A stretch of DNA of 64,000 nt from Chlorokybus atmophyticus. Its lineage: Eukaryota; Plantae; Mesostigma and Chlorokybus algae. This document shows, piece by piece, positions 1-31,485 of the stretch; position 1 is the stretch's first letter, and each line of letters begins with the position of its first letter. Location of the stretch: NCBI GenBank assembly GCA_009103225.1, contig RHPI01002090.1:1287932-1351931 (forward strand), given 5' to 3'. Below the pieces are notes generated by a model. The model was not told the DNA's origin and searched no databases. It was given only the letters and a program-made list of their open reading frames with translations. Position numbers and translations under genes: made by a program.

Positions 1-60
1 ACAGCGCACCTGCTGGCGGCCGCCTGGCCTGGTGGCCGCCGTGCAACACGAAGGGTGGAA

Positions 61-75
61 CACCGGTAGAATTGG
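61..75 (+). repeat. Left terminal inverted repeat, preceded by TSD GAA (58-60)
   Basis: CACCGGTAGAATTGG, reverse complement of 23264-23278 with one mismatch. Confidence 0.9.
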
Positions 76-215
76 CCCCCTAACAGTTTGGCTTGGACCA
101 CAACTTGGTTTAAGATCCAGCTGTAACTTATTTGGATATCTAGTAGCAACCGAGTACTGATTTCTACCTCTTTTCTTGCCTTAGTCACAACTTAATTTTG
201 TATCCAGCTGCCATT
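76..215. repeat. Left subterminal region sharing CACAACTT and ATCCAG motifs with the right end
   Basis: ccacaacttgg (~98), tcacaacttaa (~185) and gatccagctg/tatccagctg; the same motifs recur in 22500-23260. Confidence 0.6.
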
Positions 216-603
216 TAGATGAAACAGAATGCGTACATTAAAGTCGGTATCCGTCTTTTCTTGAACTTAATAATGGCCAAATCCTGCACTAATTGCTGGA
301 TAGATCATGCATTAAGAACATTGATCTTAATGCTATGCAGTGGTTGTTTTCCTCTGCATCCTCAATAATGTTGTAACCTTGGTGGGCACTTTGCAGTGGA
401 TCAGGTGTCATTATTTGTTTAAATCAGTTGTTTCGTCCACATCCGTATCTTTGTGATTGATCTGGTTAGCATTAAGTTTGTGATCAGCTTACACTTTCAC
501 ATTATGTGCTGTCTGAATCCGTAAAACTTTTAGCGCATAAAGCTTTTAGCCGTAGTTTATACGAAGAGTTTCATTTGCTCAGATCACAGTCTTTAACATT
601 CAT

Positions 604-785
604 GCCAGATCCTGAACAAAGTTTCGGTTGCGGTGTGCACGAAGTGTGGCAGTTGCACACAAACTGAGTCCCAAAGTTTCATGCAAGATCATGAACAAAG
701 TGTGGGTTGCGGTATGCACGAAGTGTCGCAGTTGCACACAATCCGAGTCCCATAGTTTCAAGCCAGATCTTGAACAAAGTGTTGT
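604..785 (+). repeat. ~78-bp tandem repeat, ~2.3 copies
   Basis: GC(C/A)AGATC(C/A/T)TGAACAAAGT starts at ~604, ~682 and ~761. Confidence 0.8.
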
Positions 786-1149
786 ATGCATCTGTTGATA
801 ATGCATGGTTGCGTGCGTACACAATGCATGTGGTGACAATGGTAGATGATGTGCAATGCTGAAATTCAAATGCAGAATCAACCAGTTCTAGGCTAGCATC
901 TAGCTAACTCAGCATTGCAATCAGCAACAATGCTGCTACTGAAGAGACTCCTGTGGCTAACAATGTGCTAGCCCAACAACCTCCGGACCATGCTCCCTTT
1001 TACCCCTCCGCAACGCCACCTCCTCGCTCACCTACCTCTTCCGATTCTGGCTGCTGCTCTTTTGCTTGCCACCTCCCGCCTTCTTTGCAGCAGCCTTCTT
1101 GCTCTCATCTCCAACCAGGTTGGCAGGCCAGCGCAACTCATCTCCTGCC

Positions 1150-3370
1150 TCAACTTTTGCACGTCCACAAGATCACGTCATCACTCCATGCGTGGCCCAC
1201 ATTTGCACCAGCAGTTAGCTTCAGCAAGCTCTTACCTTGCACCATTGTCACCAGCTCATCACCACCGCGCTTGAATGATATTGGCAGACTCGCTGCTGGA
1301 GGTGTGTTAACCTTTCCATCTACCACGCGCGGCGCTTGGGTGATGATGTGGTGCACCTGCACCACAACATTGCCCTTCCCAATGTTGGTGTCCTGGAACT
1401 CTGCGTCGGGGTCTACCAGGTTCACGGTTGCGTGGGCTACCGGATAGATGATGTCCTCCACGAACAACCTCACCGACTTCCTGCTGTCAAGTAGCTTCCC
1501 GTGCATGTCGACTACCTGCAAATGAAGACTAGCTCGAGTCAGTTTACGCCTTTGCACACACCAGCTTGCCAGCGCCCTTACCTCTTCGCAGTCCTCATTC
1601 TCCGCGTCATTGTTGTCGTCTTCGCTGCTGGCCTCCTTGTCGCTCTCGCTGCTTTCTTTGTCGTCGCTGCGGTCTCTCTCTTGTTCATCGCAGGAGCTGC
1701 CGCTGGCTGCTGAAAACTCAGACTGGATCACACAAGTTGTGTATGTAAGTGCGTGCGCCCGCGCGCGTGTGGGAGTCAGCAGCTGTGCGGCATCAGTGCG
1801 AGCTCACATCACTGCGCTGACTCTTCTTGCGTTTCTTGCTTTTCTTTGGAGCCTTGCCCTTCATACGCCTCTCCTCACTCCTTTTCTTCATCTTCTTCCT
1901 CCTCTCCTCCTCCTCCTGCTGCTGTTTGTTCTTCTTCTCCCTTGCAGCCTGCTCTGAGATGTAAGTGATTTTTTTTAGCAGACTATTCAGTTTCAGTTTC
2001 CGTTGACTTATGTTACCTGAGCAGCTTGTGTTCTTGCTGGCGTAGTCGTAGGGCTCGCCTTGAATGCAGCTGCTGCTCCACCCTGCAGCAACATGTCATC
2101 TACTCATCTGTTACGAGCTTGCACAGCCTCAAAGCTTCCCCTAGTTCAACCTGCGCGCCAATAGCCGCTTGCGTCTGGTTGCCTGAGCCTTCACTGGAGT
2201 TCCTGCCAGAAGAGGAAGGTGCCGACTTGTTGCTGCCTTTCCCAGAGTCTCTCTTGCGTTTCTTGCGGGCCTCTTCCTCTGCCTCTTGTTCTGTGCGCGT
2301 CAACTACTAGTTGAGGTATATGTACCACAAGGAGACACACACATACACGCGTGCACTGGGTTGTTTACCGGCTAAGGTCTTCAAGAGTTGTTCCGCCGCA
2401 AATAACTGCAGGGTTGACCGTGCAACATTGTCATGAGGAGATCACCGTGACAAGCAGAGCTGCAAAAGAGCTACAACCTTGTGCGGATGTCTCTTCAGCT
2501 CATTGAGGGTCGCCAATATGTTCTTCTTTTTTTCCTTGTATTGCCGATTTTGCTCCTTCTTCTTTTCGCGATACTCAGGTTCACCCCAATCCTTTGTGGT
2601 TTGGTAGAAAGTCCTGAACCTACCTCGGACCTGCACCATGACCAGTTACAGGATGACCAGCTACGTTAACCAGTTTCATTTTCCAGCCATGCAGTAGTCT
2701 GTCAATACCATCTTGCTAGCTGAATTTCACAAAGGTCACTGCGTTGCTGCTTGATGTAGTCACTCACTGACTTAAGGCAACAGAGATGTTACCTTTTCGG
2801 TAGGTTCGTCCGGGAGATAGAGCATGAGGATAGCCACTGCAAGTTGGTAGTTGAGTGGCGGCTGTTCCCGTTGATTCTTCCTAAAACGCAGCCCAACATC
2901 TCTTGCAATCCGCCTCTTCTCCTGCAAAATGTCTGCTGTCCTTTCTGCAATGGTCATATGCCGACCTCGCCATGAGTACTCCATCATCATCTGCAATCAA
3001 CAACGAAGTCGTGCTGGTGTGCTTCTGTGCTGAGCATGCAGTGCTTCAATGCTTCAGTACATTGCTGTAGTGCTTTGCATGCTTCGATTACAGTTCTTTG
3101 CATGCTTTAGTGCTTTGCATGCTTCTACAAGTGCATGCAAGGCTGCCACCAAAGAAACACATGCTAAAACATTGCCTTTGTTGGCTGGAAAGCCAAGCTC
3201 ATGGTCCTGATTGCAGCAGCTACGTGGTTGTCTGCAGCATGCCAGTCGTCATGCAGCTGCTGCTAAAAGGGTTCGCCTTCTTGGCCAAAGTGGGGTTCCA
3301 TAATGTGGATCGGGCTCCAAGGGTTCTCCGGTGGTTCATTGTCCGTGGATCTGCTGGCTTCTCCTGACAT
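1150..3370 (-). pseudogene. Multi-exon TnpA-like (Tnp1/En/Spm C-terminal-like) CACTA accessory gene, disabled
   Basis: ATG at 3370 (MSGEASRSTDNEPP...), in-frame TAGs at 3265 and 3166, coding-like segments at 2772-2996, 2442-2639 and 2100-2303. The C-terminal segment VAHATV...VVVQVHHII...LPISF...DELVTMVQG...ILW resembles the C-terminal domain of plant CACTA ORF2 proteins. Confidence 0.5.
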
Positions 3371-3893
3371 TCTTGCTACCCTTCACTAGTGCTCTTCTCA
3401 AAACCCCAAAACCCGCTGCCAACAACCTAACCGCCCGCAACCACACCGCCAACAACCTAACCGCCCCTGCCATTGACCACAACTACCGCAGCTGAAAGCT
3501 GAAAGCTTTACTCGCAGCTCCCGCAGCTCCCGCAGACAAACCGTGTGTTGCACCGTTAGATTGGACGATCAGCGGCGAGAACTCCAAGTGGTGACCATCC
3601 GATTGCTCACGCAAAAAACGCACAACTTCACTGTACTCTACTCTACTCTACTCTCAAGTGCGGTTGACACAACTTGTGCGGCAGCTAGCACTTGCCGCGT
3701 GTCACATATGGCTAAAAGGTGACAGCTGTTGTTTCGTTTTGAATTTTCAATGTCCAATGCTGCAAATGTGTTTTGGCATACCCTATGCCCAATGCTGCAT
3801 GGCCAATTAGGTTAAGTTACTGTATAAGCACACCCAAGCATCCGCCTACTTTAACACGGCGGTGGCGGCGGTGGTGGTAGTTTTGCTGAAAAG

Positions 3894-4667
3894 ATGGACC
3901 CCCCTGTACCCATGCGCACCATGAATGAGGCTCTAACGCACGCGCTCCTCACAGTCGGGTGGCGATTAGTGGGACTAGGTCAGGTCTTGACACAACCGTG
4001 GAACGGCTATGTGGACTCTGGCGATGCTCGCTATCATCAGGTTTCTTTCTCGCTATACATGGTGTGAGTTGCGTGCGCTATGTCACTCTGCATGCTGCTG
4101 ACTATGCATGCCACTATGCATGTGCCATACTGTTGCGCATTGTTTGTACATGCGTATGCCTTGTGTGCGATTTGGGTTGAGTTTGCCTGTGTAGTGTGCA
4201 TAGTTTGTCCTGCTATAATAGGAACGCCTATATATATGCACAGCTCTGATTGCTACCATGCAACACACTTGCGCGTTACATGCCGTGCATGTCATGCCAT
4301 GCTACTGCCTGAATGCGTGTCCAGTTCATGTCCATAACAATAGAGGCGCTGCCTATGCATTTGCATCAACTTCTGACGCACGTTCATGAATGAATGCGAT
4401 GCAACATGCGAGTTAACCTGTAAACTTGTTTGGCAGGTCCAATTATGCAATTGGGAGCTTTCAACTCGTGGAATTGTTTATCAGGCACCAATTGCGATTG
4501 CAGCTACTGTACAAGCTGGTGTGTATGTGACAGCCTCCGTGCATGAGAACACTCCCTCGCCTCCGAATGCGCCTCTTCCTACTCGCACTATCATTGACTC
4601 GGGCACCTATGGCGCTGCTAGCCTGCGCGTTGTGATCGAGTGCGACAACAATATTGCTGCACGCTAG
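3894..4667 (+). CDS. Two-exon orphan protein, 125 aa (exons 3894-4040, 4437-4667)
   Basis: ATG at 3894, GT-AG intron in phase 0, open frame to TAG at 4667; divergent from the TnpA-like gene; no recognisable domain. Confidence 0.5.
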
Positions 4668-5020
4668 AGTGTGTTGACTGGCTCCCAAGTCCCTGCACCT
4701 GGTGCAACGCCCGGTACCAGTCTCACACCAACTTGTAATAGAGTTTTCCCTACTCGCGACCCTCCTAGTGAACCTAGTGACACGAGTGACTCGTCGCAAT
4801 GACTATTGGTCTACACACACTTTGTTTGCCCTTTACACTTTGGTTACCGCTGAGCTGCTCTGCTGGTAAGTCTCGAAGTGTGGCTGTTGCTTGTGCAGTT
4901 ACTGATAACAGTGGAGTGTGTGCCTTTGTACAACTTGGAGATCTAGCAGCAGATCAGCTCAGGCACGACCGCCACAATTGTGTTTGCAACAACATAGTGA
5001 CTAGCAGATTAGTTACATTA

Positions 5021-5172
5021 CAACTATACTAACTATACTACACAACAACTACCAAACTACCACCAAACTATACAACTACACAACAACTACCAAACTACCA
5101 CCAAACTATACAACTACACAACAACAACAACTACACAACAACTATACAACTACCAAACTACCACCAAACTAT
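5021..5172. repeat. CAA/CTA-rich low-complexity microsatellite
   Basis: Repeated caactac/caccaaactatacaactac units. Confidence 0.9.
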
Positions 5173-5840
5173 AGGCCTTGTGCAAGGATGACGCAACGAT
5201 CTGACCTTGTACTTTGTATTACCTCATGGCCGTAGCACAGCCTGCAAGGCACAGAGGGTTGCGCTCAGAACTGTTGGACACAAATCAGGCATGCAAGCGC
5301 CTAACACTGACAGTAGAATTGCCCAAACATGCTGTTGGAAAGACCCCTCACAACTGCACTCACATATGCACAAACACAAGGTATGTTTGCGCAGCAGAAG
5401 AAGTGAACACGGACTTTTGCGACACACGCGCGCATACACACACATGAGGGCTTACAGTCAACTGCCCCAGCTGACTGGACACCATACACACACATGCACA
5501 TTCATGTGATACGCATGCAAGGATGCATGTATCTGTCCCTGTCGTCGCTGGAGCTCTTGCCAACTTCTTGGGCACTGTGACTAGCGGTGTCCTACAAACA
5601 CGCTGCAGGCAATGCTCAACCTGATGATAGCAGCTATAAGAATGCCAAGACACCCAAAACACAGAGCCAGATACTCTGATCTGAGTCTCATCCACAAATA
5701 CACCATGCCTGGCATGCGAGCTCTGGTTTACCTGCTGTCTTGGAAGCAACCGGCTGGATCATCATACCCTTTGTTGAATGCATGCAAGCATCTAAGTTAA
5801 GACCAAATACCTACCTCATGTTCGACGAGATCAACTACAC

Positions 5841-6303
5841 TGGACCTAAAGGGACCGGCCATCGCTGAATGGTAGCTGTTTACCTGTGGATCACACACCG
5901 TAGTTAACCAACAATAGAGTCAGAAATAGAGCCAGGAAATAACTTTTGAGAGACACAATGCTAGCGCAAGCACACACAGAAAGAACACCTTTTTGCCGCA
6001 AGGCCATTGAGGGGTTATGCCCAAGGCTGCCCCAGCGGCTTGCAGCAAACACCTTTTTGCCGCAGCACAGGCAAGGCCACTGAGGGGTTATGCCCAAGGC
6101 TGCCCCAGCGGCTTGCAGCAAACACCTTTTTGCCGCAGCACAGGCAAGGCCACTGAGGGGTTATGCCCAAGGCTGCCCCAGCGGCTTGCAGCAAACACCT
6201 TTTGTGCCGCAGCACAGGTAAGGCCACTGAGGGGTTATGCCCAAGGCTGCCCCAGCGGCTTGCAGCAAACACAGCACGCACAGCACGCGCACACACACAC
6301 ACA

Positions 6304-6343
<40 letters not shown>

Positions 6344-7047
6344 CATGGCATGCGCAAGGAAGCACAGCATGCACGTATCTGCTGTGTAGCCGCTAGCGCT
6401 CCAGCATCGCCACTGCCGCCGTCGACGACGACGACCTTGCCTGCGCCGGCGCCGCCGCCGCCGCCGCCGACCTTGCCTAAAATCTGCATGCGAAATAGCT
6501 GCTGTAACTCCAAAACCCTAAGTCCATGACCTAAGTCCATGGACTTAAAGCGACCGGCCATCGCTGAATGGTAGCTGTTTACCTGTAGATCACACACCGT
6601 AGTTAACCAACAGTAAAGTCAGAAATGGAGCAGGGAAATTACTCTTGAGAGACACAATGCTAGCGCAAGCACACACAGAAAGAACACCTTTTTGCCGCAG
6701 CACAGGCAAGGCCACTGAGGGATTATGCCCAAGGCTGCCCCAGCGGCTTGCAGCAAACAACTTTTGTGCCGCAGCACAGGCAAGGCCACTGAGGGGTTAT
6801 GCGCAAGGCTGCCCCAGCGGCTTGCAGCAAACACAGCATGCACAGCACGCACACACACACACACATGCATGGCATGCGCAAGGAAGCACGGCATGCACGT
6901 ATCTGCTGTGTAGCCGCTAGCGCTCCAGCATCGCCGACGCCGACACCGACGCCGCCGCCGACGACCTTGCCTGCGCCGCCGCCGCCGACCTTACCTAATT
7001 TTTGCATGCGAAATGGTTGCTGTAACTCCAAAACCCTAAGTCCATGA
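5841..7047 (+). repeat. Tandemly duplicated block (~700 + ~500 bp) with internal 73-74-bp subrepeats and (CA)n
   Basis: Both units start ggac(c/t)taaag(g/c)gaccggccatcgctgaatgg (~5841, ~6540) and end tgtaactccaaaaccctaagtccatgac (~6529, ~7047). The subrepeat marker tatgcccaagg occurs at 6016, 6089, 6162 and 6236. Confidence 0.9.
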
Positions 7048-7071
7048 CTTTGCTTAGGGTTTTGGAGTTAC
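7022..7071. repeat. Perfect 19-bp inverted repeat with 12-nt spacer
   Basis: GTAACTCCAAAACCCTAAG (7022-7040) / CTTAGGGTTTTGGAGTTAC (7053-7071). Confidence 0.9.
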
Positions 7072-7269
7072 GTACGGTGGTGAGCGACGTGGGCGGCGAA
7101 GTTGGGTTGGTGTCGTGGGCTGGCGCTGTGCTTGCTTAAGTGCTTGCATCTTTGTTATTGGGTGCGCAATTCGCGGCGTGGAGCAGTCTTGCAGTGCGGC
7201 GGCTTGCTCCAGGGTTTTGACAAATGTGCAACAAGGTGCAGAAAACTCCGTGCTTGTCTCTGTTTGCAT

Positions 7270-8060
7270 GAATGCTTGTTTGTGCACAGGGGCGGCCTCG
7301 TGCTTAAGGCCTCGTGTTTGTGGTTGCAAGAATAGTTGTTTGTGCACAAGGGCAGCCTCGTGCTTAAGGCCTCTTGTTTGTGGTTGCAAGAATGCTTGTG
7401 CTGGTTGGTGCACAGAGGCGGCCTCGTGCTTAAGGCCTCTTGTTTGTGGTTGCAAGAATGCTTGTGCTTGTTTGTGCACAAGGGCGGCCTCGTGCTTAAG
7501 GCCTCGTGTTTGTGGTTGCAAGAATGCTGGTTGGTGCACAGGGGCGGCCTCGTGCTTAAGGCCTCTTGTTTGTGGTTGCAAGAATGCTTGTGTTTGTTTG
7601 TGCAAAGGGGCAGCCTCGTGCTTAAGGCCTCTTGTTTGTGGTTGCATAAATGCTTGTGCTGGTTGGTGCACAGGGGCGGCCTCATGCTTAAGGCCTCTTG
7701 TTTGTGGTTGCATGAATGCTTGTGCTGGTTGGTGCACAGGGGCGGCCTCATGCTTAAGGCCTCGTGTTTGTGGTTTCAAGAATGCTTGTGCTTGCTTGTG
7801 CACAGGGGCAGCCTCGTGCTTAAGGCCTCTTGTTTTTGTGGTTGCATGAATGCTTGTGCTGGTTGGTGCACAGGGGCGGTCTCGTGCTTAAGGCCTCGTG
7901 CGTCAAGGCCTCTTGTCTGTGTTCCTCTTTGTGCTTGTTGTTTTGCTGAAAACACCAGAGCAGCCTGAGAAGCTTGAGGCAACCCAGTCCGACGAATGAA
8001 TGCTTGTGCTGGTTGGTGCATAGGGGCGGCCTCGTGCTTAAGGCCTCGTGCGTTAAGGCC
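7270..8060. repeat. Minisatellite of 60/66-bp units (>=11 copies), open in several frames; the minus frame encodes 20-22-aa repeats (QAFLQPQTRGLKHEAAPVHQPA)
   Basis: gcttaaggcct at 7302, 7362, 7428, 7494, 7554, 7620, 7686, 7752, 7818, 7886 and 8036; ORF 7054-7803(-). Confidence 0.9.
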
Positions 8061-8217
8061 TCTTGCCTGTGTTCGTCTCTGTGCTCGTTGTTTTGCTTAG
8101 TGGCTTACCAGGTTGTTCATCATGCCTGCCAAGCGCAAACTGGTTCGCATTGGAGACCAGCTGCCTGCAGGTAACTTTGTGATGTTTTAGCTTCTCGGCT
8201 CCAATCTCACACTTCTC

Positions 8218-10398
8218 ATGAATCACATGCTTGCTCATACTGGTGCTCAACATGTATGCCCATTCTCAACAGAGAAGAAGATGAAAACACCAGAGCAGCC
8301 TGAGAAGCTTGAGGCAACCCCGTCCGACGAAGACGTTGTGGCTAAAGCAACAGCTTATTACAAAGCGTTATTTAGACAGTGGAAAAGTGCCAGACGGACC
8401 AAGAAGCGCGACGTAATCTCATGGGACAACATGGTGCTCGACATCAAGGTAGCTCTGCAGAACAGCATGGACTACTGCGCGCTCTCTGATGATTCAAAGA
8501 TGGAGTTATACAAATTCCTGATGAAGGAGCTCACTCAATGTGATAAGAAGGCAGCAGCTGGCGGCATAGACCTGGGGGACTTTGTCGACAAACCTGAAGC
8601 TGGCTCTTCAACCTCGCGCACTCACATTTGGGAGTCTAATCTGCCTGCTGAACAAACGGGTGCTGAGAGAAGGCTGAGTGGGTTGTTGAAGGAGAAAGGC
8701 CTGCGTGTGTGTGATGCCTATGGTAATGGGAATTGCTTTTACTACTGCATTGCCCAGTCGCGCCCCACCGTGAATGCTGGATGCCTGCAGCGCGACAAAG
8801 CACTTGACAAAGAGGATTTCTGGCGCAGCATTGTGCTGGACAAAGGACGAGAGCTGCCAATCGCAGTGCAAGCAGTCAAGCTGCGCAAGTTGTGTGCCAA
8901 GCAGGTCAACCTTGCTTGGTTGAAGGAGCTTCGCAACTACCTGGCTTCAGACATGGGCAAGGACTACGAGCAGTGTGCTGCAAGATTGCATTTAGAGGAG
9001 CATATAAAGAACGATGATGACAAAGGCGTTATTGCTCATTCCAAAATGATTGCTCACGAGTCTGTTTATGCGGATGAACTGCACTTGGCTTTGATGGCGT
9101 AAACGCTTGGCATTTGCATCGGCACATCGCAGATTATTGCAGATGCAGCTGGCAGGTACTGCTTGGAAGTGGAAAAATCGGGTGCACTCTTCGAGGGTGC
9201 AGATGGGAGCTACTTTCAAACAACCACCAACACAGAAAGTAAACAAGAACAGAAGTACGTGAAACCGGTCATGCTGCTTGGCGAGGATGTTGATGACCCG
9301 GCCAGTCATGTGATCATTGGCAATACGAGTCCAGGCTCGAACGAGGCGCATTACTTGTCCATTGGTGATCCCAGTGGCAACCTCTCCTGGGCGTTTAGTG
9401 ACATGCCATCAGAAATCAGCCATTTCCTTTACCCCAATGGGTTGCCGACATCAGCGCCCAGTGCAGACTCTGCGCCTCTCCATACGCCCTCGTCTTGCAG
9501 TAGACCCCCTGTGCAGGAAGCTGAGGGCCAGGCCAAGCCAAAAGCCGAGGCGGAGGCCAAGCAAAAAGCTGATGCTGAGGACCTTGCAGCCAAGGCAAAG
9601 TAGGAGGCCGAGCACAGGGCCAAGCAGGAAGCTGATGCCAAAGCAAAAGCCAAGCAGGAAGCTGCTGAAGCCAGGGCCAGGCAGGAGGCAGAGACCAAGG
9701 CAGCTGATGATAAAACCAGGCAGAACGCTGCTGAAGCCAAGGCCAGGCAAGATGCTACTGCCAGGGGCAAGCAGGTACTGGTACTTCGGAGGTACGGATG
9801 AAAATGGTCCACATGTCTGCGCATAGTCCACGTGGAACTAAGCGTGATGCTTTGCAGGTTGATGAGGAGGCTGAGGCTGCTGGGGATGTTCCTCCCATTG
9901 GTTCCGACAGTTCCGACAGCAGCGCTCCAGCACCCGCCACCAAGAAACAAAAGTCGACGCCAACAAGCGGCCAAGAGCAGACATGCAGCCACTTTGCGGG
10001 GCAAGTGCTGGTTCGGCAATCGCTGCAAATTTTCACACGCTGTTGAGAAAGAGCAGACATGCAGTTACTTTGCGCACGGCAAGTGCTTGTTTGGCGATCG
10101 CTGTAAATTTTCGCACGCTCCAGAAATGGCCACCACGCCTGCCAGCGCTGTTGAGAAACTGCATCAGCTGCAGCAGGGCACTCGCACAGTGCAAGAGTTT
10201 CACAAGGAGTTTGTACCGTTGTGCAGTGTTGCAAAGGTGCATAAGGCTCTCAAAGTAGAGTTGTTTCTCAAGGGACTTCGAAAGGAGGTGTTTATTGGGA
10301 TTCAAAAGGGTCCTTGCAACCGAGATTGGTGGGGTGATCAGTTCACCCACCTCGTGCTTGAAGCCCAACAGTTCAAAAATTCCTTGCGTGATATCTAG
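8218..10398 (+). pseudogene. OTU-like cysteine protease + K/A/E-rich linker + 2x CCCH zinc finger + Ty3/Gypsy gag-like domain, disabled
   Basis: OTU Cys box VCDAYGNGNCFYYCIAQ (~8707-8757) and His box HYLSI (9349). CCCH fingers C..F..GKC.FG.RCKFSH x2 (~9985-10117). Gag-like AVEKLHQLQQGTRTVQEFHKEF...ELFLKGLRKEV. In-frame TAA at 9100 and TAG at 9601, intron 9775-9857, 1-nt frameshift in the first finger. A Q/E/R-rich frame continues to 10669. Confidence 0.75.
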
Positions 10399-10847
10399 GA
10401 TACAGGCAAGCTCAATCACAATACCTTTTCGCCAGGCAAAATATCTCGTCATAACATGCAAAAACTGGATCGGCTGGAGCGCACCGCAGGCCGAACGCAG
10501 AGCAGGAAGCTGGCTAAAACTTCACCATGAGCGCGAGCGGGAATTGATCGCTGAGCAGCCGACACCTGAGCAGCAAAAGAAGCTGAAGCAGCAGCTATTA
10601 GAGCAGCGGGAGGAGGAGCGGCGGAAGCAGCGGCAAGAGCAGAAGCAGAAGAGGCAGCAGCAGCAGTGAAGCACTACACGCCTTGCAGGTTTGAATATAC
10701 ACTTTGCATCAGGCACATAATTGTTGGAATTTTTGTTATTGACATATACTGTTGCAGTGCCTGTGCATCTTGGCATTGACAAACAACACTTCGTCTGCTC
10801 GTCATAACAAGTGTGCTGCAAGTCATCATTACTACACTATGACCATC

Positions 10848-11804
10848 TCAGTAGAATGGTGCATAGTCCACTACAAAGCCCATGGCCTCTAGCAGCAGTC
10901 GACCTACATGCTCAGAGTCAGCAGGTGGAATTGCATTTCTTATTTCATGTTCTTCTTCCATCCATTCAACCTGCATTGCTGACTGCCATCGTGCAACCGT
11001 GCCACGACATGATGCCTAGCCATACACCGGGTGGATCTGCCTCTCTCCAGGTTGCAATTGCTTGCGCTGTTCCGGGTGGGTGGACAGCTCTCCAAGGGCA
11101 GAGTCAGCGTGGTTGCATCTCAAGTCTGAGCGCAGCGGGGGGTTCGTCTCAAAAATGCGATGCCGATACACGTCAAGGTTGAACATGCTGCCGCATAGCT
11201 TAAGGTGAGCAGTCATGTGCGTAGATGCCCCTGCTATGTTCTCTATGACCCATGGCTTGCCGCTCAACTGCACCCTTGTTCTCATGGGTGCAATTAGGTT
11301 GACGTGATCCCAGCAATCTCCGAAAGTGGCTCGTTGACAAGAAGAAATGGCACCACTGAGCGCTTGACATGGAGGACTCGCCCATAATGCATGGTATGGG
11401 GACAGGTCGGCGTCTAGTGCATCCAGCTGATTGAACTTGAATGGGTATAATGGTTGAGGCTTGTTGTCTATGCCCTCAACATCAAAACCTGCCCTGTACA
11501 GGCCCATGGCTACTCCACCCGCGCCGCAAAAAAGGTCCAGTGCACGAGGCCTGTAACGTCTGCCGCTTGGGTCGCATGGAGTTCGCGTTAAAAGAAGTGG
11601 CGATGGCTTGGGCCAAGGATTGAGCTCTCTCCCAGGCAAGTCCTGAAGTTTCAGGCAGGATTGACCCCCAACGCGAACCATCACTACCTGTATGTCCGGA
11701 ACAAGGCTTTGCATTGGGATCGCCGCAATGTTCCACTTTTTGATCAAGATGTGGTGCAGCCGTGGATCCTCATTGTAATCGTCGTACTGGACGGTATGTT
11801 TTCC
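10848..11804 (-). pseudogene. C5 cytosine DNA methyltransferase of prokaryote/phage type, one internal TAG
   Basis: Motif I DLFCGAGG, IV WASPPCQ (11364-11375), VI VIENI, VIII RHRIFETN. After TAG at 11016-11018 the frame continues ASCRGTVARWQSAMQVEWMEEEHEIRNAIPPADSEHVGRLL (motif X-like) to TGA at 10848. No intron in the catalytic part. Confidence 0.85.
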
Positions 11805-13152
11805 TATGCCACGGCAAGTGCTTAAATAAGTACACATATGTACATTATTGAAAAGATAATATTGTAAAGATATATTACATGTAATCACAATATATGTATA
11901 TAGCACATTTTATGGTCACGTCAGTAATTGATGACGTGGCATGAGGTTGTAGGTGCAAACCCTTATTCATAGCAAAATAATTCCCGTGAATGTAGACTTT
12001 ACTCCCTTCTTGGCATCCCGAGAATACCCCGGTCAGTGGAATGACAAGCTTCAAGATAAACGATGATTCGTATTACGGTAGAGGACTGTACTTCTCACCA
12101 ACACTACAACTGAGATAACACTGCCCGCAATTACGACGACTACCATCCTACTTTGATAAAAGATGATTTGGAGTCCGATACCCAATGCACCGTACTGTCA
12201 GTTGATGGCACGGTCCCCCCCGTGTATTACCAAGCCAGCGGACAAGCATGTGGTGCGTGCGTAGCAGGTAGCTAGCACGTAGCACGACTGCGACTTCAAG
12301 TAGGTAACAGCAGCGTGGTTACCTAACACGTACACCAATACAGCCACGGCTCCGCGGCTCGTCCATGCATGGGCCGCGGGTGGTGTGTCCCCGCAAAGCA
12401 GACGTGAACTGTCAACAGGTTGCAATACCGTTAGCGAGAGACGGGCTTGCTCCTGTGACATGACCCCATGTCTCGAAAACGACGCATTGCACAGTGGCAC
12501 CGTCACGTTACTGACGTCACGACAACAACCGGTGTAGGGTGTTCATCCTAGGTGGTTCTGGTGGTTCTTTGCTTGTCATGCTAGCATTCCTCGCACACTC
12601 CGTTCTTGAACGGACACAACCTCGGCTTGCCAAGCAGCCCGGCGGCAATACAGCACATATGCCTATGGTGGTAGCCTACCCTTAGGCGGCATGTTTGCTG
12701 TCACGTAGGTAGGCACGTAGCCCTGTCCCCCGCCTGCCAGCCTAGGCAGTGCTCCTCTAGGTGTATGCACGGAACATTGCACGTTGCTGACACGCGCGCA
12801 AAAATGGCAGAGGAGATGTTTTATTTTAATACATATGTTCGCAACATCCGTCTAGCATCCTCTCAAGCTCCGTCGCTATCCTCTTGGTGTAGTCTTCGGG
12901 CCGCGGAAGTGCGTATGTAAGCAAGCATAAGTGAGAGCTTCACCGTAACATCTTGTGTGTGAGTGAGACGCCTTGCAGCTGCGTGTGGAGAGCACAGGTG
13001 AGTTGTCGGGAAGAAGTTGTGACGTGCAGATTGCTGTTGGCACTGTTGGCACTGTGAGTCATGGCTGTGTACTCGTCTCATGCTGACAATGACTGTATTG
13101 TGTAGGACCAACTGGCAGCAAGCCCATGCACACAACGCCTTCTTCCTCAACC

Positions 13153-15956
<2,804 letters not shown>

Positions 15957-16439
15957 GTTTGTGTGTGTGGAGAAAGAGGAGAGCGACAATGGCCAAAGGA
16001 CAGCATGCAGTTGTGATTGTCATCACTACAATCCATGGGAAGACACGCGCTGTGGATTTGTTGTGTCCACGAGTTGTGGTAGTTGGTAGGCAAGCAAGGC
16101 TTTATATAGGCAGGCGCGTTTTGTTGTGCAGGAGTGGGGTGACTTGAGTATGGACCCTGTACATTGTAAGCGTCATGAATAAAGAATAAGTAACTTGCTG
16201 TTTAAATTGAATTTATTGGGCTGACAGCAACGACAACTCGAGCGTACACATGCACATGCACGCACAATTGCTCTCTCACGCCCATGTAGCCAGCTGTGAG
16301 AAAGTGAGCGCACGCGCGTGCGTGCATGTGTGTGGCCATGGAAACGGGGGGTGGGTACAAGTGGCTGTCGCACTTGCAATGCTGTTAATACTGTTAGCTG
16401 TTGTGCGGGGCCAAACACGTAGGAAGGAAAGGGGGGAGG

Positions 16440-17062
16440 NNNNNNNNNNNNNNNNNNNNNNNNNNNNNNNNNNNNNNNNNNNNNNNNNNNNNNNNNNNNN
16501 NNNNNNNNNNNNNNNNNNNNNNNNNNNNNNNNNNNNNNNNNNNNNNNNNNNNNNNNNNNNNNNNNNNNNNNNNNNNNNNNNNNNNNNNNNNNNNNNNNNN
16601 NNNNNNNNNNNNNNNNNNNNNNNNNNNNNNNNNNNNNNNNNNNNNNNNNNNNNNNNNNNNNNNNNNNNNNNNNNNNNNNNNNNNNNNNNNNNNNNNNNNN
16701 NNNNNNNNNNNNNNNNNNNNNNNNNNNNNNNNNNNNNNNNNNNNNNNNNNNNNNNNNNNNNNNNNNNNNNNNNNNNNNNNNNNNNNNNNNNNNNNNNNNN
16801 NNNNNNNNNNNNNNNNNNNNNNNNNNNNNNNNNNNNNNNNNNNNNNNNNNNNNNNNNNNNNNNNNNNNNNNNNNNNNNNNNNNNNNNNNNNNNNNNNNNN
16901 NNNNNNNNNNNNNNNNNNNNNNNNNNNNNNNNNNNNNNNNNNNNNNNNNNNNNNNNNNNNNNNNNNNNNNNNNNNNNNNNNNNNNNNNNNNNNNNNNNNN
17001 NNNNNNNNNNNNNNNNNNNNNNNNNNNNNNNNNNNNNNNNNNNNNNNNNNNNNNNNNNNNNN
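16440..17062. other. Assembly gap (623 N) flanked by G-runs
   Basis: N run with gggggagg before and ggggcggggg after. Confidence 1.
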
Positions 17063-18903
17063 GGGGGCGGGGGCGTGCAATACATCCGCCTTGATGCTTA
17101 CTCACTCGCCTCCTCCTCCTGACAAGAAAGTCACTTCATATTAAGTGAATGCACCGCATGATATTGCTGCACGCGGGGGCATTGCTTTTCGAGCACTTCC
17201 ATATAGGGAAAACTTTCCCTACATGACTTGCGAACTCTTAGTATGTATAACATGACGGAACACAAGCAAATGTGTCCGTTAACATGCATGTAATATCATA
17301 TGTTAATGCACATACGTATACATGTATAACAGCACCGTGTGCACAACCACCTCATAGCAACGACTACCACAAGCAGGGGCTGGCCCAGGCCCTTAAGTTC
17401 CAAAAACCTTGGACAAAGGGTCTCGGCCAGCCCGAAATTATTGCACTTTGTGTGACACGGGCAAGGTGTACAATTGTTGCAAATTGCCCAGAACTCTGCC
17501 TTTGTGTAATACAGCGTTGCCAAGTGATGACGCAAAGTGCAGTACCACAATCAGCATATGTTGGCGAGCTGCTGCAGCTCTCCGCACCCACACCCACATA
17601 AGCACGCAAAGCCTTGATATATTTGCTCAACAAACAGGGTGCCGCTACCATATGAGGAGCCTCATGTCCCATGCCATACGGGACAGTGTTTCATAACCAC
17701 ATATGTGACATTCCTCGACTCATTTACTTATGCCGCTTTGCTATTAATAAGACTATCACGTGTGTTACATGTTTTAATCGCCGCAAATGCATGCTGCATG
17801 CAACGGGTCACATAGTAATCTCATGCAGCAGGTTCCCAATGAATTAGTTATCGGCACAAGCCGGCGATTGTGCCAATGGTTAAAACAATCTCACCAAGCT
17901 GTGGACCCGAACGGTGCTTTGAATGCATATGATTGTATGCATATGCGTTGGATCAAACATGTGGCTGTCAACACTGCTCTTTCTTATAAGTTACAAAACA
18001 AAGCTGCTTATAGTTTTATACAACCGTAACATACAACCTTAACCAGTTGGCTACGGTCGCGAATATGAGATCGTAGGAGGAGCCATATATCTCGTAATCT
18101 TATATGTCGCAATTGTTTGTAATGCCACGCTTTTTAGTATGACACCATCATACTGGCTTTTATTATAACGCTCTTGCTGCATAGTCACTATGTATACGTA
18201 ATGGCTAATACATTGGTATGCGGAGCATGCAATGCATTCAACCATACTGCATGCATTTGAGTGGGTTGTGTCGTAAATGCAACATAAGAGATTTTCGCAA
18301 TTTGCATGTTTTTTTAATTCATATAGATGCAAATAATGCTTTGTGCTTTTGTAGTACGCGCACGTGTGAAATCCGCGCACATGATCAATGGCACGTCATG
18401 AGCCACTTGCATGTTGTGATTAATGGCGGATGGCGGGTTGCCGACACGCCTAGCACACACCACCATTGGCTTCAACACTTTGATAACTGCTACTTATAAC
18501 ATTGAAAACGTGCCATAATATGCACATATTCAGTTCATGCACATTTATTAAGTGCATATAAATACATTTTTACAAAATGCATACATCATGCACTTACGCT
18601 TGATCTACATGCATGGGTATGATGTGGCTATGTAAACTCAACTTTGACCGTGGTCTATTTCTAAATAATGAATTGTACTTATCTAAGAAGTGCATGGACA
18701 CATAAAAATTAGGCATCTTGTACCATGCACTTCATCCATGTGAATGCCGTTAAGCGCAGAGGTGTTAGCCTTGAGTTTCACACGTCCATAGGACGTCAGC
18801 GGCGGCCAGATTGTATGCACTTGTACGCTCTCATCGAGGTAGGACTGCAGGTCCGATAACGTTATGTCAAGAGTTAGTTCCCGCATGTAATAACCATATG
18901 CAG

Positions 18904-20412
18904 GGTCTATGAAGTCCCACGACAAGCACAACCTATGGTCTGTTGTCTTTCAGTACGTCTTGCATTGTGCACGAGGGATAGGAGCTGAGCAAAAGGCCAC
19001 CATAAACAAGCTTTGTGAAGTCTATCAACGACTCACGGCTTTTGAAGTTGAACAATCCCAACTGGAAGAATTGCGTGTGAGTATGTCAGCAACCATGCCT
19101 TCTGGGTCTGTGTGTTGCATCTTGGCGCATGCATAGTTGACATCGTTTGTCAAAGCAGTTGATGGTGTGGGAGGTGCAGTGCGAGGTGGAGCTTTACTTC
19201 CCACACACGTGTCTCACCAGCATGCTACATTTATTGGGTCACTTGGCGGACCAATGCATGTGGTTGGAACCTGTTCGAGACCACTGGGAGTGGGCTTATG
19301 AGAGGCTTATCAACTTTGTGAAAAAGAAGGGTTTGGCGCGCCAAGCCATTGAAGCCAGCACTTGCAGGAGGTGAGTCACTGACTGAGTGAGGTGAGTCAC
19401 TGACTGATACCTACATGAATGACAAAGTGCATGCTAACGTCTGCTTGTGAACAGGTATGCCATCCACACAATGGTTAACACGCAGATGAATCACCTGCAG
19501 ACAGTGTTCCCAACTATCACCTTGAGGTCAGAAAAGCAGCGGCAAGATGACGATTTCAGATTGCTTGGTGCAAAGCGTATCGTGTGGTTCGGGGCCAAGA
19601 GCAAGTTGCGCCAGCAGCTGGAGCACTGGCTGGCGGAGAATGACGAACAGTTCAACAGGCTGAAAAGGTGAGCTTGTGAGTCTGCTTGCCAAAAGGAGTG
19701 TCGAGTGAGTTTAATATGCTGTGGATTTTCAGCTCACATATGAATGTTGCAAAGAATTTGAAGCTTGCAAGGCGAAGCAGCGACAGCAAAACAGCAGAGC
19801 CAAGAGGGCAGGCCAAGAAGCCAACGAGGAAAACCTCAACAATGACATTTGTAAATGGTGGCCAAGTTGACCTCTGACCGATCATGAAGAGAGTCTTTTA
19901 AAACTGCCCAGCCAGCTGTTGCGTTACAAGCGTGCCGTATACAAGAACATTGGCCAGTTCAGAGCAGAGAGTATGGAATCATGCATGGAGACCATGGATT
20001 GTGGAGTCTTTACCATTGGCTATGCTGAGTGTGCAAGCCCAGCAGAAGCAATGACCTGGTACGGGCGCGTGCAGTCGTTTGATGTGGTATGCATCGCCGG
20101 TAATGAGCATCATTTGGTGAGAGCCAAGTGGTACAACCCTTCGGCTGTCAAGTTTCGTGACGGCTTCCCTTTGGTGGATTGGCGGAAGCCGTTTTACACA
20201 AAGTCAACTTACATCTCGTGTGATCAGGTGGGATGTGTGTGAAGCAGATTGCACAGTGCCTTCTTAATCTCAATCACTTAAATATGCAACACATGACCAG
20301 GTTCGTGGGCAGTGGTTTGAAGGCGTAGATGTAAAAAACAAACACGTCATTGTTGTGTTGACCAAAGACCGCCGAAGTCATCATGCGCAGGGGGGTCAAG
20401 CGCCCTCGTTCG
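18904..20412 (+). pseudogene. CACTA/EnSpm TnpD-like transposase, C-terminal half (DUF4218 + DUF4216-like), spliced and disabled
   Basis: MKSHDKH...VELYFPHTCLTSMLHLLGHLADQCMWLEPVRDHWEWAYER matches the KSHD..H / EMYFP..FF..M.HL..HL....GPV..RWM...ER pattern. TWYGRVQSFDVV...LVRAKWY...YISCDQVRGQWF is DUF4216-like. TGA at ~19868 and a frameshift at ~19918. Confidence 0.85.
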
Positions 20413-20622
20413 GTAAGCACATGCTGCACACGCACTGCGGTTTTATTGACACAGGATAACACAATCTTGTCGATCTGGTAGGGACCTGGAGAGTCCAACG
20501 GGCAAAGCGATCGGTCGTGGTCCACGCTCCGCGCATGGCATTGGGAGTACAAAAGGTGTCCTCCTTGTTGTGCTGTGCTGTGCAACAACTTCCACCACAC
20601 ACACACTTTACGTGTTTTGGTA

Positions 20623-22140
20623 GGGTGCAAGCTAACTTTGAAGCTGAAGCTGTTTACAAGGATGAAGCTGAAGACTGCTGCTTTGTTTGCAAAGATGGTG
20701 GTCATGTTGTCTGCTGTGACAAGCAAGGTTGCCTCAAGAGCTACCACCCCCGCTGCTTGGAGAAACCACTGCCAAAAGACGAGGCCGAATGGGAATGCCC
20801 AAGGCACAGGTAGGCCAATTTTGACAATTAAACTCACATTGTGTGAACCTCATGACGTTGTGGATTTTACCGTGCATTTTCCAATGCAGCTGCTACAACT
20901 GTGAGCTCCCGGCGGTGCAGCGCTGCGCAACTTGCCCAGTCAGCTCCTGCAAGAAGCATTCAACTGGTCGCACGAAACTCGTTACATGTATGCGCTGTGC
21001 TGCGTTGGAGGAGGGTGGTGCACCTGTTAAGATGCCAAGGCGTCTGCGGAGGAATGAAGGGAAGGAGGGTGTTGCAGATGATGTTCCCAAAGTCAGTCAA
21101 TTGCAAGCGGATGAGAGTGATGCCCGCACGCAGGCACCTGCCCACAGTGGACAAGGTGTGTATGTGTTATATTTGCTTGCTGTTTGTGTACTTATGCATA
21201 GTCACATAGTGCTAACCAACAATGCGTGTGCGCAGAGGTTGACGCAAAGGTGATTGATATGGTTACGGATGAAGACATGGATGAGGCTGCGCTTAGCGAA
21301 GACAACAACTTGGGTGATGGCGGTGCTGAGGATATGGTGACAGGCCCTTTGGTGCTCGACACCTTTTACTATCCTGCAGCAGGTGATTCTCGGGTGCCAA
21401 TTACTGAACACGACATCGCAACGCTGCAGCCCGGTGAATGGCTCAACGATACCATCATCAATTTTTACTGCAGGTAACTTAATTGCTTGCACTTTCCAAG
21501 CTTACATCTGATTTGGAGAATAATCAACTAACACAGAATCACTACTTCATGCAATGGTAGGTACTTGCAAGAAGAATGTTTGGATAGGCGACGAGATCAA
21601 GTGGTCATGCTATCGCCCTTCTTTTACAGCTTAGCAGCTGAGAGCATCCAGCATGTTGCGGGCTGGTCATGGTTGCAGGACCCCTTCAGCTTCAACTACC
21701 TTGTGGCACCCGTCAACCAAAGGCAATCATCGCGTGCTCGTAAAATCACAGTTTGCATGCCTTGCAGTGCATTTGGAACATCTATTCATGACAGCAATTG
21801 TTGGCAGTGTGCATTGGTCGATGGTGATTGTGTGCAACCCTGGTGGTGAGCCCGGCAGCGACACGCCTCCTTTCCTTCTGCATCTTGACTCAAAGCCCGG
21901 ATTCAATGTAAACGTGGATGGGCCGTTCAGGGCATGGCTGGAGTTCATGTGGCAGCGCGTGCGGCGTACAAGCCCTGGTGATCGCTTCTCACTGGTCAAC
22001 ATGCTATTGATAACACCCAAAGTGAGTGTCTGCACACTGTGCTGTGTTGCTACAAGAAGGATTGCACTGACTAATGCCTGCAACCATTAGCGCAGGTGCC
22101 ACAGCAGCGGAATGAATCAGAAATGTGGTGTTTTTTGCCT
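20623..22140 (+). pseudogene. PHD finger (NSD-type PHD plus C5HCH-like) fused to Ulp1/peptidase C48 SUMO protease, frameshifted at the catalytic Cys
   Basis: [26 protein letters not shown]...WECPRHSCYNC...CATCPVSSCKKH; DIATLQPGEWLNDTIINFY, PVNQSVHWSMV, LHLDS, VPQQRNESE+1nt+CGVFL (TGT at 22124). Exon phases are consistent across introns. Confidence 0.85.
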
Positions 22141-22499
22141 TGCACAACGTATAGTTAGTTGCGCAAGCTGTTAGGGATGGTCCTGTCTCACCCACGTCAC
22201 CTATTGTGCAACAGGTGAGGATACACTGACTTTCTTTAATAGCAGCCATTCTCACTAACACGTGGTTGTTTTCGCAAATGCATCGCAAGTGGTTTCCAGT
22301 GAGGGATGCCATTGAGAGGAGCGATTGTGCAATTGCTGGAGAGGCTTAGAGCTGGAGGGTAGTTGAGTGCCTTGTCTCTAATTGGCTTGTTTTGTATGTT
22401 GTCACAGCCTGCATTGCTGGCTTGAACTAGAGGAACTTTGTGCAACCTAAATACAGAGTTTATGTACTTCATTGCATGTGGGTGTAGCAGCAATCAACT

Positions 22500-23278
22500 T
22501 GGTACTGCAGCCATAACATTTGGGACTTAGACCAATTCACATAACAGCACTGGGTGACAATTTACAAGTTGTGAAAGTAGCCACAACATTTGGGACTTAG
22601 CAAAAAACACACAACGACACTAGGTGTAAGGTTGGACACAGTTGTGGATGTGGTCATAAGAGTTGGAAATCAGCAAGAAACACACAAAGACACTAGGTGT
22701 AAGGCTGAACGAAGTTATGGATGCGGTCATAACATTTAGAGCTAGGGCAAGTGATAAAGAAGCAGGTAACTGTTTATGCCTTGAGTGTGAATTTTGTTCC
22801 GCATAGGGCCACAACTTGATTGGACCCTTTGCCAGCTCGTCAAATTAAACTGGAGCTGGTCCCAACTTGCTTAGGGATTAGAAAAAATTGTGTTGTAAGA
22901 TCACTGTTGCGGAGTTAACCAAGAGAGTATTGTGACTGCAACTCAAAAGTATTATCAAGTTCAAGTCACAATCTTGTTAGGGCCTTTCATCATAGGTCAC
23001 AAAAGCTGGAGGAGGTCACAACTTTATTAGGGATCTATATAGTACAGAGCATCAACAGAGGTTAATGGCAGTTTGTTCAAGACATAGCCACAACTTAATT
23101 GTGGATCTATTCGCAAGGAAGTGTCAACGAAAAAGCGCTTTTGTGACAGGCACGAACCGGATTAAGGATGTAGCCACACGTTATTTAGAGATCTTGCCGA
23201 TCCCCAACAAACTTTGCACAAAATCACAAACAAAGTTGTGGATCCAGCCTGACATGCCGTAACCCATTTCTACCGGTG
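22500..23278. repeat. Right subterminal repeat array and right TIR (23264-23278), followed by TSD GAA (23279-23281)
   Basis: Multiple CACAAC(A/T)TT and AGTTGTG motifs in both orientations, duplicated gcca(c/t)aacatttgggacttag, TIR CCATTTCTACCGGTG. Confidence 0.8.
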
Positions 23279-24153
23279 GAAGGGCAATCAGGTGCGCTGC
23301 TGCGCACTACACGACAAGACATGCACAAGCACACAAGCACATACCTGACGCCGCCGCTGCCGCCGCCACTGCCACCGCCACCGTCACCGCCACCGCCGCC
23401 GCCGCCGCAGCAACACAATGTTGTGTGCATTAACGCTCAACTGCGCAAGTCAACTTGCACAGTTGAGCGTTGTGTTGCGGCTTAGCGCTTGAATTCACAA
23501 GGGGCCGTTGAGTTTGAAAACTCAACGGCTTCCCTTATGACACCATCGTACCAATACGATGGTACTCATGTACCATCGTAATGGTAAAAAAGTACTAAAA
23601 CAATGGTACCATTGTTTTAGTACTTTGTAATGATACTGCTATACCATATCGATGGTACGATCAGACCATTGTCTTCAGATGAAACTTCCATCGTATCATA
23701 TATCGGTACTTGTCCCAAATCACCGCCACCGTTTGTCCCTAAGTTGGGACTGATAAGTCACTTGCTTGCCATTTTTGATACATCACCGTCGCAAAATGCT
23801 ATACGACCGGCGGTCGGTCGTATTAACTACGTAAATATTCCGTATCATTTGCCGAAATTAGGGGACTGAGAGGTGATTTTATTGCCATAACAGGTAGGTC
23901 GCCGCCGCGGGTGCTGTACGACCGGCGGTCGGCCATCGACCGAAAAAAAATTACAAGCAGATCATGACAGGCAGGCAGCAGTTCATTATATTGTACGATA
24001 GGCCATCGGCCGTTGATTGTTGTCCACAGTATACACCGGCAATCCAGTCAGTCCCTTTATGGCCCAAGTCGTCAGGGTTAGGTACGGTTAGGTAGGGTCA
24101 GACACTCGTCAGTCCCTCAGTCCCTGGTCAGTCACCGTGTAAAATTTGCAACG
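23279..24153 (+). repeat. Copy A of a ~1-kb hairpin-rich repeat (continues from 1-60; interrupted by the giant CACTA element)
   Basis: Collinear, diverged match to 30622-31485; hairpins at 23432-23471 and 23504-23529; 38-bp perfect palindrome at 23589-23626. Confidence 0.9.
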
Positions 24154-30558: not shown

Positions 30559-31485
30559 ACAGCGCACCTGCTGGCGGCTGCCGCCGCCTAGCCTGGTGGC
30601 CGCCCTGCAACACGAAGGGTGGAAAGGCGGTCAGGCTGCGCTGCTGTGCACTACACGACAAGACATGCACAATCACACAAGCACATCACATCACAATCAC
30701 ACAAGCACACCTGCCGCCACCGCGGCCGCGGCCGCCACCGCCATTGCCGCCGCCGTCACCGCTGTCGCAGCAGCATAACGCTCAACTGCGCAAGTCAACT
30801 TGCACAGTTGAGCGTTGTGTTGCGGCTTTGCGTTTGATTTCACAAGGGGGCCGTTGAGTTTAAAAACTCAACGGCTTCCCTTATGACACCATCGTACCAT
30901 TACGATGGTACTTTTGTACCATAGTAATGGTACAAAAGTACTAATACAATGGTACCGTTGTAATGGTATTGCTGTACCATATCGATGGTACGATCGTGCC
31001 ATTGTCTTGAGACGAAACTTCCATCGTATCATATATCGATACTTGTCCCAACTCGACGCCACCGCTTGTCCCTAAGTTGGGACTGAAAAGTCACTTGCTT
31101 GCCATGTTTGATACATCACCGTCGCAAAATGCTATACGACCGGCGGTCGGTCATATTAATTACGTAAATATTCCGAATCATTTGTCGAAATTAGGGGACC
31201 AAGAGGTGACTTCATTGCCATAACAGGTTCGTCGCCGCCGCCGCGGGTGCTGTACCACCGGCGGTCGGCCGTCGACCGATAATTACAAGCAGGTCATAAC
31301 AGGCAGGCAGCAGTCCATTATGTTGTACGATAGGCCATCGGCCATTAATTGTTATCCACAATATACACCGGCAGTCAAATCAGTCCCTTTATGGCCCAAG
31401 TCGTCAGGGTTAGGTACGGTCAGGTAGAGTCAAGCACTCGTCGGTCCCTCAGTCCTTCGTCAGTCACCGTGTAAAATTTGCGACG
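30559..31485 (+). repeat. Copy B of the ~1-kb hairpin-rich repeat; contains the empty CACTA target site (single GAA at 30622-30624)
   Basis: 30559-30624 matches 1-60 and 30622-31485 matches 23279-24153; hairpins at 30777-30816 and 30850-30875. The left boundary cannot be fixed because copy A runs off the window. Confidence 0.9.

Follow-up and report, generated by a model that had tools for sequence, protein, structure and literature searches.

A 23-kb insertion in the alga Chlorokybus atmophyticus, very probably a relic copy of an EnSpm/CACTA transposon family with passenger genes

We analysed a stretch of 64,000 nucleotides, called the window below, from the genome of Chlorokybus atmophyticus, an early-diverging streptophyte alga (assembly GCA_009103225.1, contig RHPI01002090.1, positions 1,287,932 to 1,351,931 of the forward strand). 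Its left part holds a segment, 61-23278, with inverted termini and a remnant of a transposase. Very probably this segment is one insertion of a large EnSpm/CACTA transposon, of a family which carries passenger genes, and the copy seen here is an old, non-autonomous relic. The evidence comes from the ends of the segment, from a second copy of the repeat into which it is inserted, from a transposase domain lying inside it and from contigs of other copies. The ends and the target are described by the following features, where TIR stands for terminal inverted repeat and TSD for target-site duplication.

58-60, no strand: left TSD, GAA, within GGTGGAA
61-75, plus strand: left TIR, CACCGGTAGAA(TTGG)
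23264-23278, minus strand: right TIR, (CCAT)TTCTACCGGTG, from the symmetry of the ends and from a contig of another copy which stops at 23278
23279-23281, no strand: right TSD, GAA, from the flanking sequence and the alignment with the paralogue
30559-31485, plus strand: uninterrupted paralogous target repeat (the "empty site"), whose one GAA lies at 30622-30624

An exact copy of the 11-mer CACCGGTAGAA is found at only two sites in the window, 61-71 on the plus strand and 23268-23278 on the minus strand, that is, in inverted orientation. When the left end is aligned with the reverse complement of the right end, 11 of the first 11 bases and then 14 of 15 are identical, and a block CCACAACTT is common to both ends, 38-46 bases inward of each terminus. 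The termini have the form 5'-CAC...GTG-3' (CACCGGTAGAA / TTCTACCGGTG), sequences confined to the two ends, and GAA stands directly outside each of them while the uninterrupted paralogue has it once. They begin with CACCG and not with the canonical CACTA or CACTG. This deviation, already reported in a first-pass annotation of the same DNA, is minor, as CAC..GTG termini together with a 3-bp TSD suffice: these are the accepted criteria for EnSpm and have been used for fungal elements (PMC12730594). A third occurrence of CACCGGTA, at 36619-36626, was considered as another terminus; it has no subterminal motifs and was judged to be due to chance.

The direct repeat at the junctions is in fact 7 bp long, GGTGGAA at 54-60 and again at 23275-23281, and it includes the last four bases of the TIR. 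As the 7-bp repeat overlaps the TIR, the reading of a 3-bp TSD rests on the symmetry of the TIRs and on the end, at 23278, of the diverged contig described below. The target carried GGTG immediately before GAA, or was selected for carrying it.

In a self-BLAST of the window, positions 1-60 match 30559-30624 at 88% (E 2e-16) and positions 23275-24153 match 30618-31485 at 85.7% over 893 bp (E 0). In a three-way alignment the two flanks abut on the uninterrupted copy, around its one GAA. Relative to this paralogous repeat, 61-23278 is an insertion. The first-pass annotation had taken 30559 onward for the empty target site: the flanks do rejoin there with one GAA, but the site is a paralogous repeat copy about 86% alike and not an allele. 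The inserted segment itself has no similarity to the rest of the window at E below 1e-3.

Inward of the TIRs, both ends are rich in repeated motifs.

76-900, plus strand: left subterminal region, with CCACAACTT-type motifs at 98 and 185
588-790, in the left subterminal region: 79-bp tandem unit in three copies, with GAACAAAG motifs
22400-23267, minus strand: right subterminal region, with CACAACTT/AAGTTGTG at 22566, 22810, 23017, 23089 and 23233
22497-22712, in the right subterminal region: unit of about 72 bp in three copies

The terminal 1.7 kb contain 7 occurrences of the motifs CACAACTT/AAGTTGTG and the other 62 kb of the window contain 10, which is an enrichment of about 24-fold, and the subterminal motifs are repeated in both orientations, as in EnSpm/CACTA elements. 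The inverted termini, the flanking GAA and the shared subterminal motifs of the first-pass annotation are thus confirmed by the unique 11-mer, by the 14 of 15 TIR bases and by the motif counts.

The right third of the segment holds the transposase remnant, preceded by a stretch of different composition and followed by the passenger gene which lies nearest to the right end.

17063-18890, plus strand: AT-rich stretch (GC 0.42-0.44), nothing recognisable where the N-terminus or the DDE core of the transposase is expected
18894-20239, plus strand: transposase remnant, from the DUF4218 match, motifs and the C-terminal open reading frame (ORF)
18894 to about 19080, plus strand: exon with the motif MKSHD, followed by a putative GTGAGT intron donor
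19141-19371, plus strand: DUF4218 exon (PF13960)
19871-20239, plus strand: C-terminal ORF, putatively DUF4216/DUF6830-like
20460-22150, plus strand: PHD(NSD-type)-C5HCH-Ulp1-like (SUMO protease) gene of several putative exons, from Pfam and motifs

The ORF 19141-19371 is a DUF4218 domain by Pfam (E 1.2e-7, 32.1 bits against a cutoff of 27). A phmmer search of this exon against the whole library gave 13 weak matches, the best at E 2e-6, and no close relative. Among these relatives, P0009, P0011 and P0012 have DUF4218, P0009 and P0011 have Transposase_21 and P0011 has DUF4216. The ORF 19871-20239 had no match in Pfam and no significant one in BLASTP; its atlas score is 0.96 against fungal clusters structurally tied to Transposase_21, DUF4218, Plavaka and DUF6830 proteins. 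The first-pass annotation had cited DUF4218/DUF4216 transposases as a mark of CACTA/EnSpm elements: here the first domain is established, and the second is suggested by the atlas score, with no Pfam match. The DDE core (Transposase_21) gave no Pfam match at relaxed thresholds among the plus-strand ORFs of at least 45 amino acids in 17063-19140, and tblastn with the Transposase_21 proteins P0009 and P0011 returned only noise there. It may lie in the assembly gap described below or in very short exons, and its absence concerns the present copy and not the family. With no detectable DDE core, the present copy is not autonomous. The Plavaka transposase domain PF18759 had no Pfam match in the ORFs scanned, and the termini are CACCG, not TGT..ACA or CATCA..TGATG. 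A "TnpA-like" gene at 1-2000 was rejected, as no Transposase_24 or other domain was found there.

The domains of the gene at 20460-22150 are PHD_NSD (E 1.2e-6), C5HCH (E 0.002, weak) and Peptidase_C48 (E 0.059). The Ulp1-like motifs WLND, FFY, HW, LDS and QQ.N..C were read by eye, and the Ulp1 ORF had no match in a PDB sequence search.

To look at other copies, we aligned contigs from four public runs (X1 to X4; Logan, low coverage) to 18000-23900 at a likeness of at least 80%. Contigs from two of them aligned: X1 (organism A) contributed 27, X2 (organism B) contributed 38, and X3 and X4 contributed none. Together the X1 and X2 contigs tile 19052-23278; they are 90-100% alike to the window, most of them 90-99%. 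One X1 contig (record 7, 271 nucleotides, 93.6% alike) matches 23028-23278, ends at the last base of the TIR and has 20 unmatched letters beyond. It stems from an independent copy, which has another flank. An X2 contig (record 10, 20115-20476) joins the end of the C-terminal ORF of the transposase to the start of the PHD ORF, and further contigs cover the PHD, C5HCH, Ulp1 and subterminal regions at a similar divergence (91-96%). This means that the family is present in multiple copies in the data of two organisms, that the right boundary lies where the first-pass annotation had placed it, and that the PHD-Ulp1 module travels with the transposase and the right terminus. The first-pass annotation had cautioned that common movement of the cargo cannot be told from one copy. 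This caution was well founded; the question is now answered in part, for the block of transposase, PHD, Ulp1 and terminus.

Another X1 contig departs from the window behind 20785, in the PHD exon, and continues with ACCGGTAATTATGAGACCCCC; read with the C before it, this looks like a related CACCGGTA terminus. Members of the family nest in one another, as a CACCGGTA terminus is found inside another copy.

Several other details of these alignments can be mentioned. One X2 contig (record 15) has 184 nucleotides identical to 21012-21195, though most other X2 contigs are 90-95% alike. In one X1 contig a piece which equals 26371-26400 of the window runs on into the element at 20131; the contig could be an assembly chimera or come from a rearranged copy, and no similarity between the two regions explains the join. 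A block specific to the present copy, proposed at 18000-18787 from its low contig depth, was dropped because bins within clearly shared regions are equally empty. A loose end at 18958 reflects local divergence of homologous coding sequence and is no breakpoint. Of the differences between the copy and the contigs, most are transitions (A>G, C>T, G>A, T>C), with a share of about 65% in each of X1 and X2, and the nonsense codon at 9601, in the left half of the segment, is TAG where the adjacent repeat units read CAG. The excess of transitions and this TAG would fit decay through deamination of 5-methylcytosine (5mC).

The assembly is interrupted inside the segment.

16440-17062, no strand: assembly gap, 623 N (estimated length), with G-rich runs on both sides

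The continuity of the element across this gap is supported indirectly but strongly, because the outer flanks rejoin into one repeat copy sharing one GAA and because the two ends form a matched terminal pair. The claim of a single CACTA-like insertion, advanced in the first-pass annotation, is borne out by the ends, the 3-bp TSD, the uninterrupted paralogue and the DUF4218 domain inside. Other unread letters are one N at 14486, within a (CT)n microsatellite, and a run of 28 N at 54340-54367, a gap outside the element.

Besides the PHD-C5HCH-Ulp1-like gene, three further passenger units have domain support.

8218-10395, plus strand: OTU-like/coiled-coil/2xCCCH/gag-like frame (frame 1), a pseudogene, from Pfam and in-frame stops
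10872-11909, minus strand: short C5 cytosine DNA methyltransferase of phage or prokaryote type, broken, made up of the ORF 11019-11909 and its continuation past a stop
13462-14031, plus strand: NIDO exon of a larger putative gene (Pfam NIDO, E 2.6e-16)

At least five non-transposase genes had been announced in the first-pass annotation. Domain evidence exists for only four passenger units, and at least two of the four are pseudogenes in the present copy. The regions 14539-15255 and 15314-15808 had no Pfam matches.

Along the frame 8218-10395 one finds, in this order, an OTU-like cysteine motif (GNGNCFYY), a KAKQEAE coiled coil, two CCCH fingers (zf-CCCH, E 8e-11) and a Retrotrans_gag-like domain (E 8e-7); in-frame stops lie at 9100, 9601 and 9799. 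The OTU assignment is tentative: this part has an atlas score of 0.87, a PDB sequence search reached only E 0.4 to viral OTU chains, Pfam gave no OTU domain in the frame and a search for homologues of the OTU ORF found nothing.

The family assignment of the C5 methyltransferase, made from its sequence, is firm. The ORF 11019-11909 has 1016 homologues, the best at E 3e-40. The motifs I (FCGAGG), IV (PPCQ) and VI (ENI) precede the stop at 11016-11018, and NAIPP follows it in the same frame; the tblastn match runs on through this in-frame stop, so that the enzyme is not encoded by a single intact frame. Its identity to P0021, and to short enzymes of some 210-270 amino acids, is 53%. Its relatives are only 45-55% alike, and those looked up lie on phage-like contigs; around three of the homologues the neighbours are phage genes (ERF, Sipho_Gp157, an integrase, Dam and a primase), and the nearest homologues sit on contigs which resemble tailed phages. 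Because of the stops in the OTU-like frame and in the methyltransferase, and of the lack of a DDE core, we regard the present copy as decayed.

In the left 8 kb of the element we recognise only tandem arrays, some 2.3 kb long in total, and an acidic ORF; the Pfam scan of the ORFs there gave no recognisable domain.

1153-1803, minus strand: acidic Ser/Glu/Lys-rich ORF of 217 amino acids, a putative gene, no Pfam match
5841-8097, no strand: internal tandem arrays, from a repeat search and self-comparison
5998-6290 and 6706-6852: 73-nucleotide units inside a duplicated block of about 700 bp
7253-7943: 66-nucleotide unit in about 11 copies, part of the internal arrays

Perfect inverted repeats of 19 nucleotides, GTAACTCCAAAACCCTAAG / CTTAGGGTTTTGGAGTTAC, stand at 6504-6522, 7022-7040 and 7053-7071, at the edges of the internal arrays, and contain a telomere-like core AACCCTAA. 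Elsewhere in the window there is a single-exon gene for a Castor/Pollux-like ion channel (Castor_Poll_mid, RCK; 43099-44928, minus strand), which is 100% identical over 609 amino acids to the EukProt entry jgi/Chlat1/4032/Chrsp26S04093. As Chlat1 is the name of Chlorokybus atmophyticus (strain CCAC 0220) on the JGI portal, this identity confirms that the genome is that of Chlorokybus.

How could such an element have worked? By analogy with its superfamily, a DDE transposase would recognise the CAC...GTG termini and the CACAACTT-type subterminal repeats, and would excise the element and reinsert it elsewhere, duplicating 3 bp (here GAA). The passenger genes would ride beside the transposase, presumably including the phage-type methyltransferase and the OTU-like/CCCH/gag-like gene, and, as a pure conjecture, they could plausibly read or modify chromatin at the family's own copies or at their targets. 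In the present copy the catalytic core is missing, undetectable or hidden in the gap, and passenger genes carry nonsense mutations; the element may have acquired the NIDO gene, the AT-rich block and the tandem arrays only secondarily. A stronger proposal is that a giant CACTA family mobilises together a whole chromatin module, made of the phage-derived C5 methyltransferase, the PHD-SUMO protease and the OTU-like/CCCH protein, by which it would mark its own copies, target them or lift their silencing. We put this forward as a tentative idea, which is rather doubtful at present.

Several points weigh against a single large cargo-carrying insertion. The microhomology GGTGGAA formally permits other placements of the boundaries, or a deletion in the paralogue. 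The unspanned 623-N gap sits inside the element, whose length is therefore an estimate, and may hide further content. With no DDE core, membership in the superfamily is argued from the DUF4218 domain, the terminal sequences and the TSD. The comparison of copies covered the right third of the element. Finally the passenger genes and their introns are predicted from sequence.

Three other explanations were weighed. A smaller CACTA backbone could have grown by nested insertions and rearrangements (NIDO, 17063-18890, the arrays, possibly the methyltransferase and the OTU-like frame), in which case much of the cargo never moved along with it. The replacement of the expected DDE region by unrecognisable AT-rich DNA speaks for such a composite origin, as does the nesting seen in the family, where a related terminus stands inside another copy; on the other hand, other copies show linkage of the PHD-Ulp1 block with the transposase and the terminus, and no internal pairs of TIRs and TSDs were found inside the element. 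We consider it unlikely, while giving it some weight. A joining error of the scaffold at the N gap, by which 61-16439 and 17063-23278 would come from different loci or elements, is much less credible. It is true that the gap is unspanned and of estimated length, and that a family in many copies is the type of repeat which confuses scaffolding. But the outer flanks fit together, to the base, as one repeat copy in which they share one GAA, the ends are a matched pair of TIRs and subterminal regions, and for a misjoin to look like this, independent insertions would have to have struck two repeat copies at the same base.

The least probable explanation, to which we give next to no credit, is that there was no insertion: the 23 kb would have been part of the ancestral repeat, and it would be the paralogue at 30559-31485 that lost them, by a deletion between GGTGGAA repeats or by clean excision. 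The 7-bp direct repeat present at both junctions speaks for it, yet the inverted termini of the segment match, subterminal repeats and the domain of a CACTA transposase lie between them, and the similarity of another copy ends exactly at 23278; if the loss were by excision, the segment would remain a transposon. We retain the reading of 61-23278 as one insertion of a large EnSpm/CACTA element. The present copy is a relic, and what it contributes is evidence on boundaries and not on function: the clean ends, the TSD and the uninterrupted paralogous target place chromatin-related genes inside one mobile unit.

Compared with the classical EnSpm/CACTA elements (maize En/Spm, Arabidopsis CAC1, Volvox Jordan, Chlamydomonas Tcr3), the Chlorokybus element is alike in its CAC...GTG TIRs, its 3-bp TSD, its subterminal motifs in two orientations and its DUF4218 domain; the C-terminal ORF which follows may be a DUF4216-like domain, as in those elements. 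It differs by its CACCG termini, by a size of 23 kb against typically 8-15 kb, by the lack of a TnpA-like (Transposase_24) ORF, by at least four passenger units and by an undetectable DDE core. The first-pass annotation was thus right to call it larger and more gene-rich than a typical CACTA, but neither its size nor its gene number is without precedent. EnSpm elements of Chondrus crispus, of 16-20 kb and with 4-5 ORFs, are on record (Kojima 2013, as cited in PMC6431247), and the giant Plavaka elements of Bostrychia, of 17-19 kb, carry three accessory genes which modify chromatin or DNA, have adjacent tandem arrays and dominate the genome (bioRxiv 10.1101/2025.02.11.637652). The Chondrus EnSpm and the giant Plavaka of Bostrychia and other red algae belong to the same superfamily as the Chlorokybus element and, at 17-20 kb, are of similar size; they share with it several DNA- or chromatin-modifying accessory genes, internal tandem arrays and the degeneracy of most copies. 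The host is different, a streptophyte alga, and so is the transposase, which by its DUF4218 domain is of EnSpm proper and not Plavaka. The cargo differs too: here a C5 methyltransferase, the PHD-C5HCH-Ulp1 gene and the OTU-like/CCCH/gag-like frame, there the PAG1-3 cassette, whose PAG2 (N6-adenine methylase PF01555 and SET) and PAG3 (ParB-like and 2OG oxygenase) are not in the Chlorokybus element; Pfam gave none of PF01555, SET, ParB-like and 2OG oxygenase among the ORFs scanned.

Genes of TET/JBP dioxygenases are carried by fungal EnSpm, Plavaka and KDZ transposons (PMC12730594). These carriers are likewise cut-and-paste transposons of the same broad clade, with a co-mobilised accessory gene for an enzyme which acts on cytosine methylation, whereas the Chlorokybus enzyme, whose nearest relatives are phage methyltransferases, is predicted to write 5mC and not to oxidise it. 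C5 methyltransferases have been captured by retrotransposons (de Mendoza et al. 2018, as cited in bioRxiv 10.1101/2021.11.30.470311), and the capture of PHD and Chromo readers by transposons has been described as well (bioRxiv 10.1101/2021.11.30.470311). The combination of a C5 methyltransferase and a histone-reader domain in a mobile element is the same; the retrotransposons concerned (Copia, LINE-like) are, however, of another class than this DNA transposon with its short enzyme of phage type. In a literature search we met with no account of a DNA transposon bearing a C5 methyltransferase and none of such elements in Chlorokybus, though absence from that search is not proof.

What is new is the set of cargo genes and the host lineage, while the principle of a large cargo-carrying CACTA element was already known. 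The cases known up to now of transposon-borne enzymes which modify DNA or chromatin come from fungi (TET/JBP), red algae (N6-methylase/SET) and retrotransposons (DNMTs). If the gene set is confirmed in intact copies, these cases would extend to a phage-type cytosine methyltransferase, in a family sitting in a lineage near the root of the plant line. Should the idea of a chromatin module also prove true, no DNA transposon family before this one would have been shown to bring along its own writer of 5mC.

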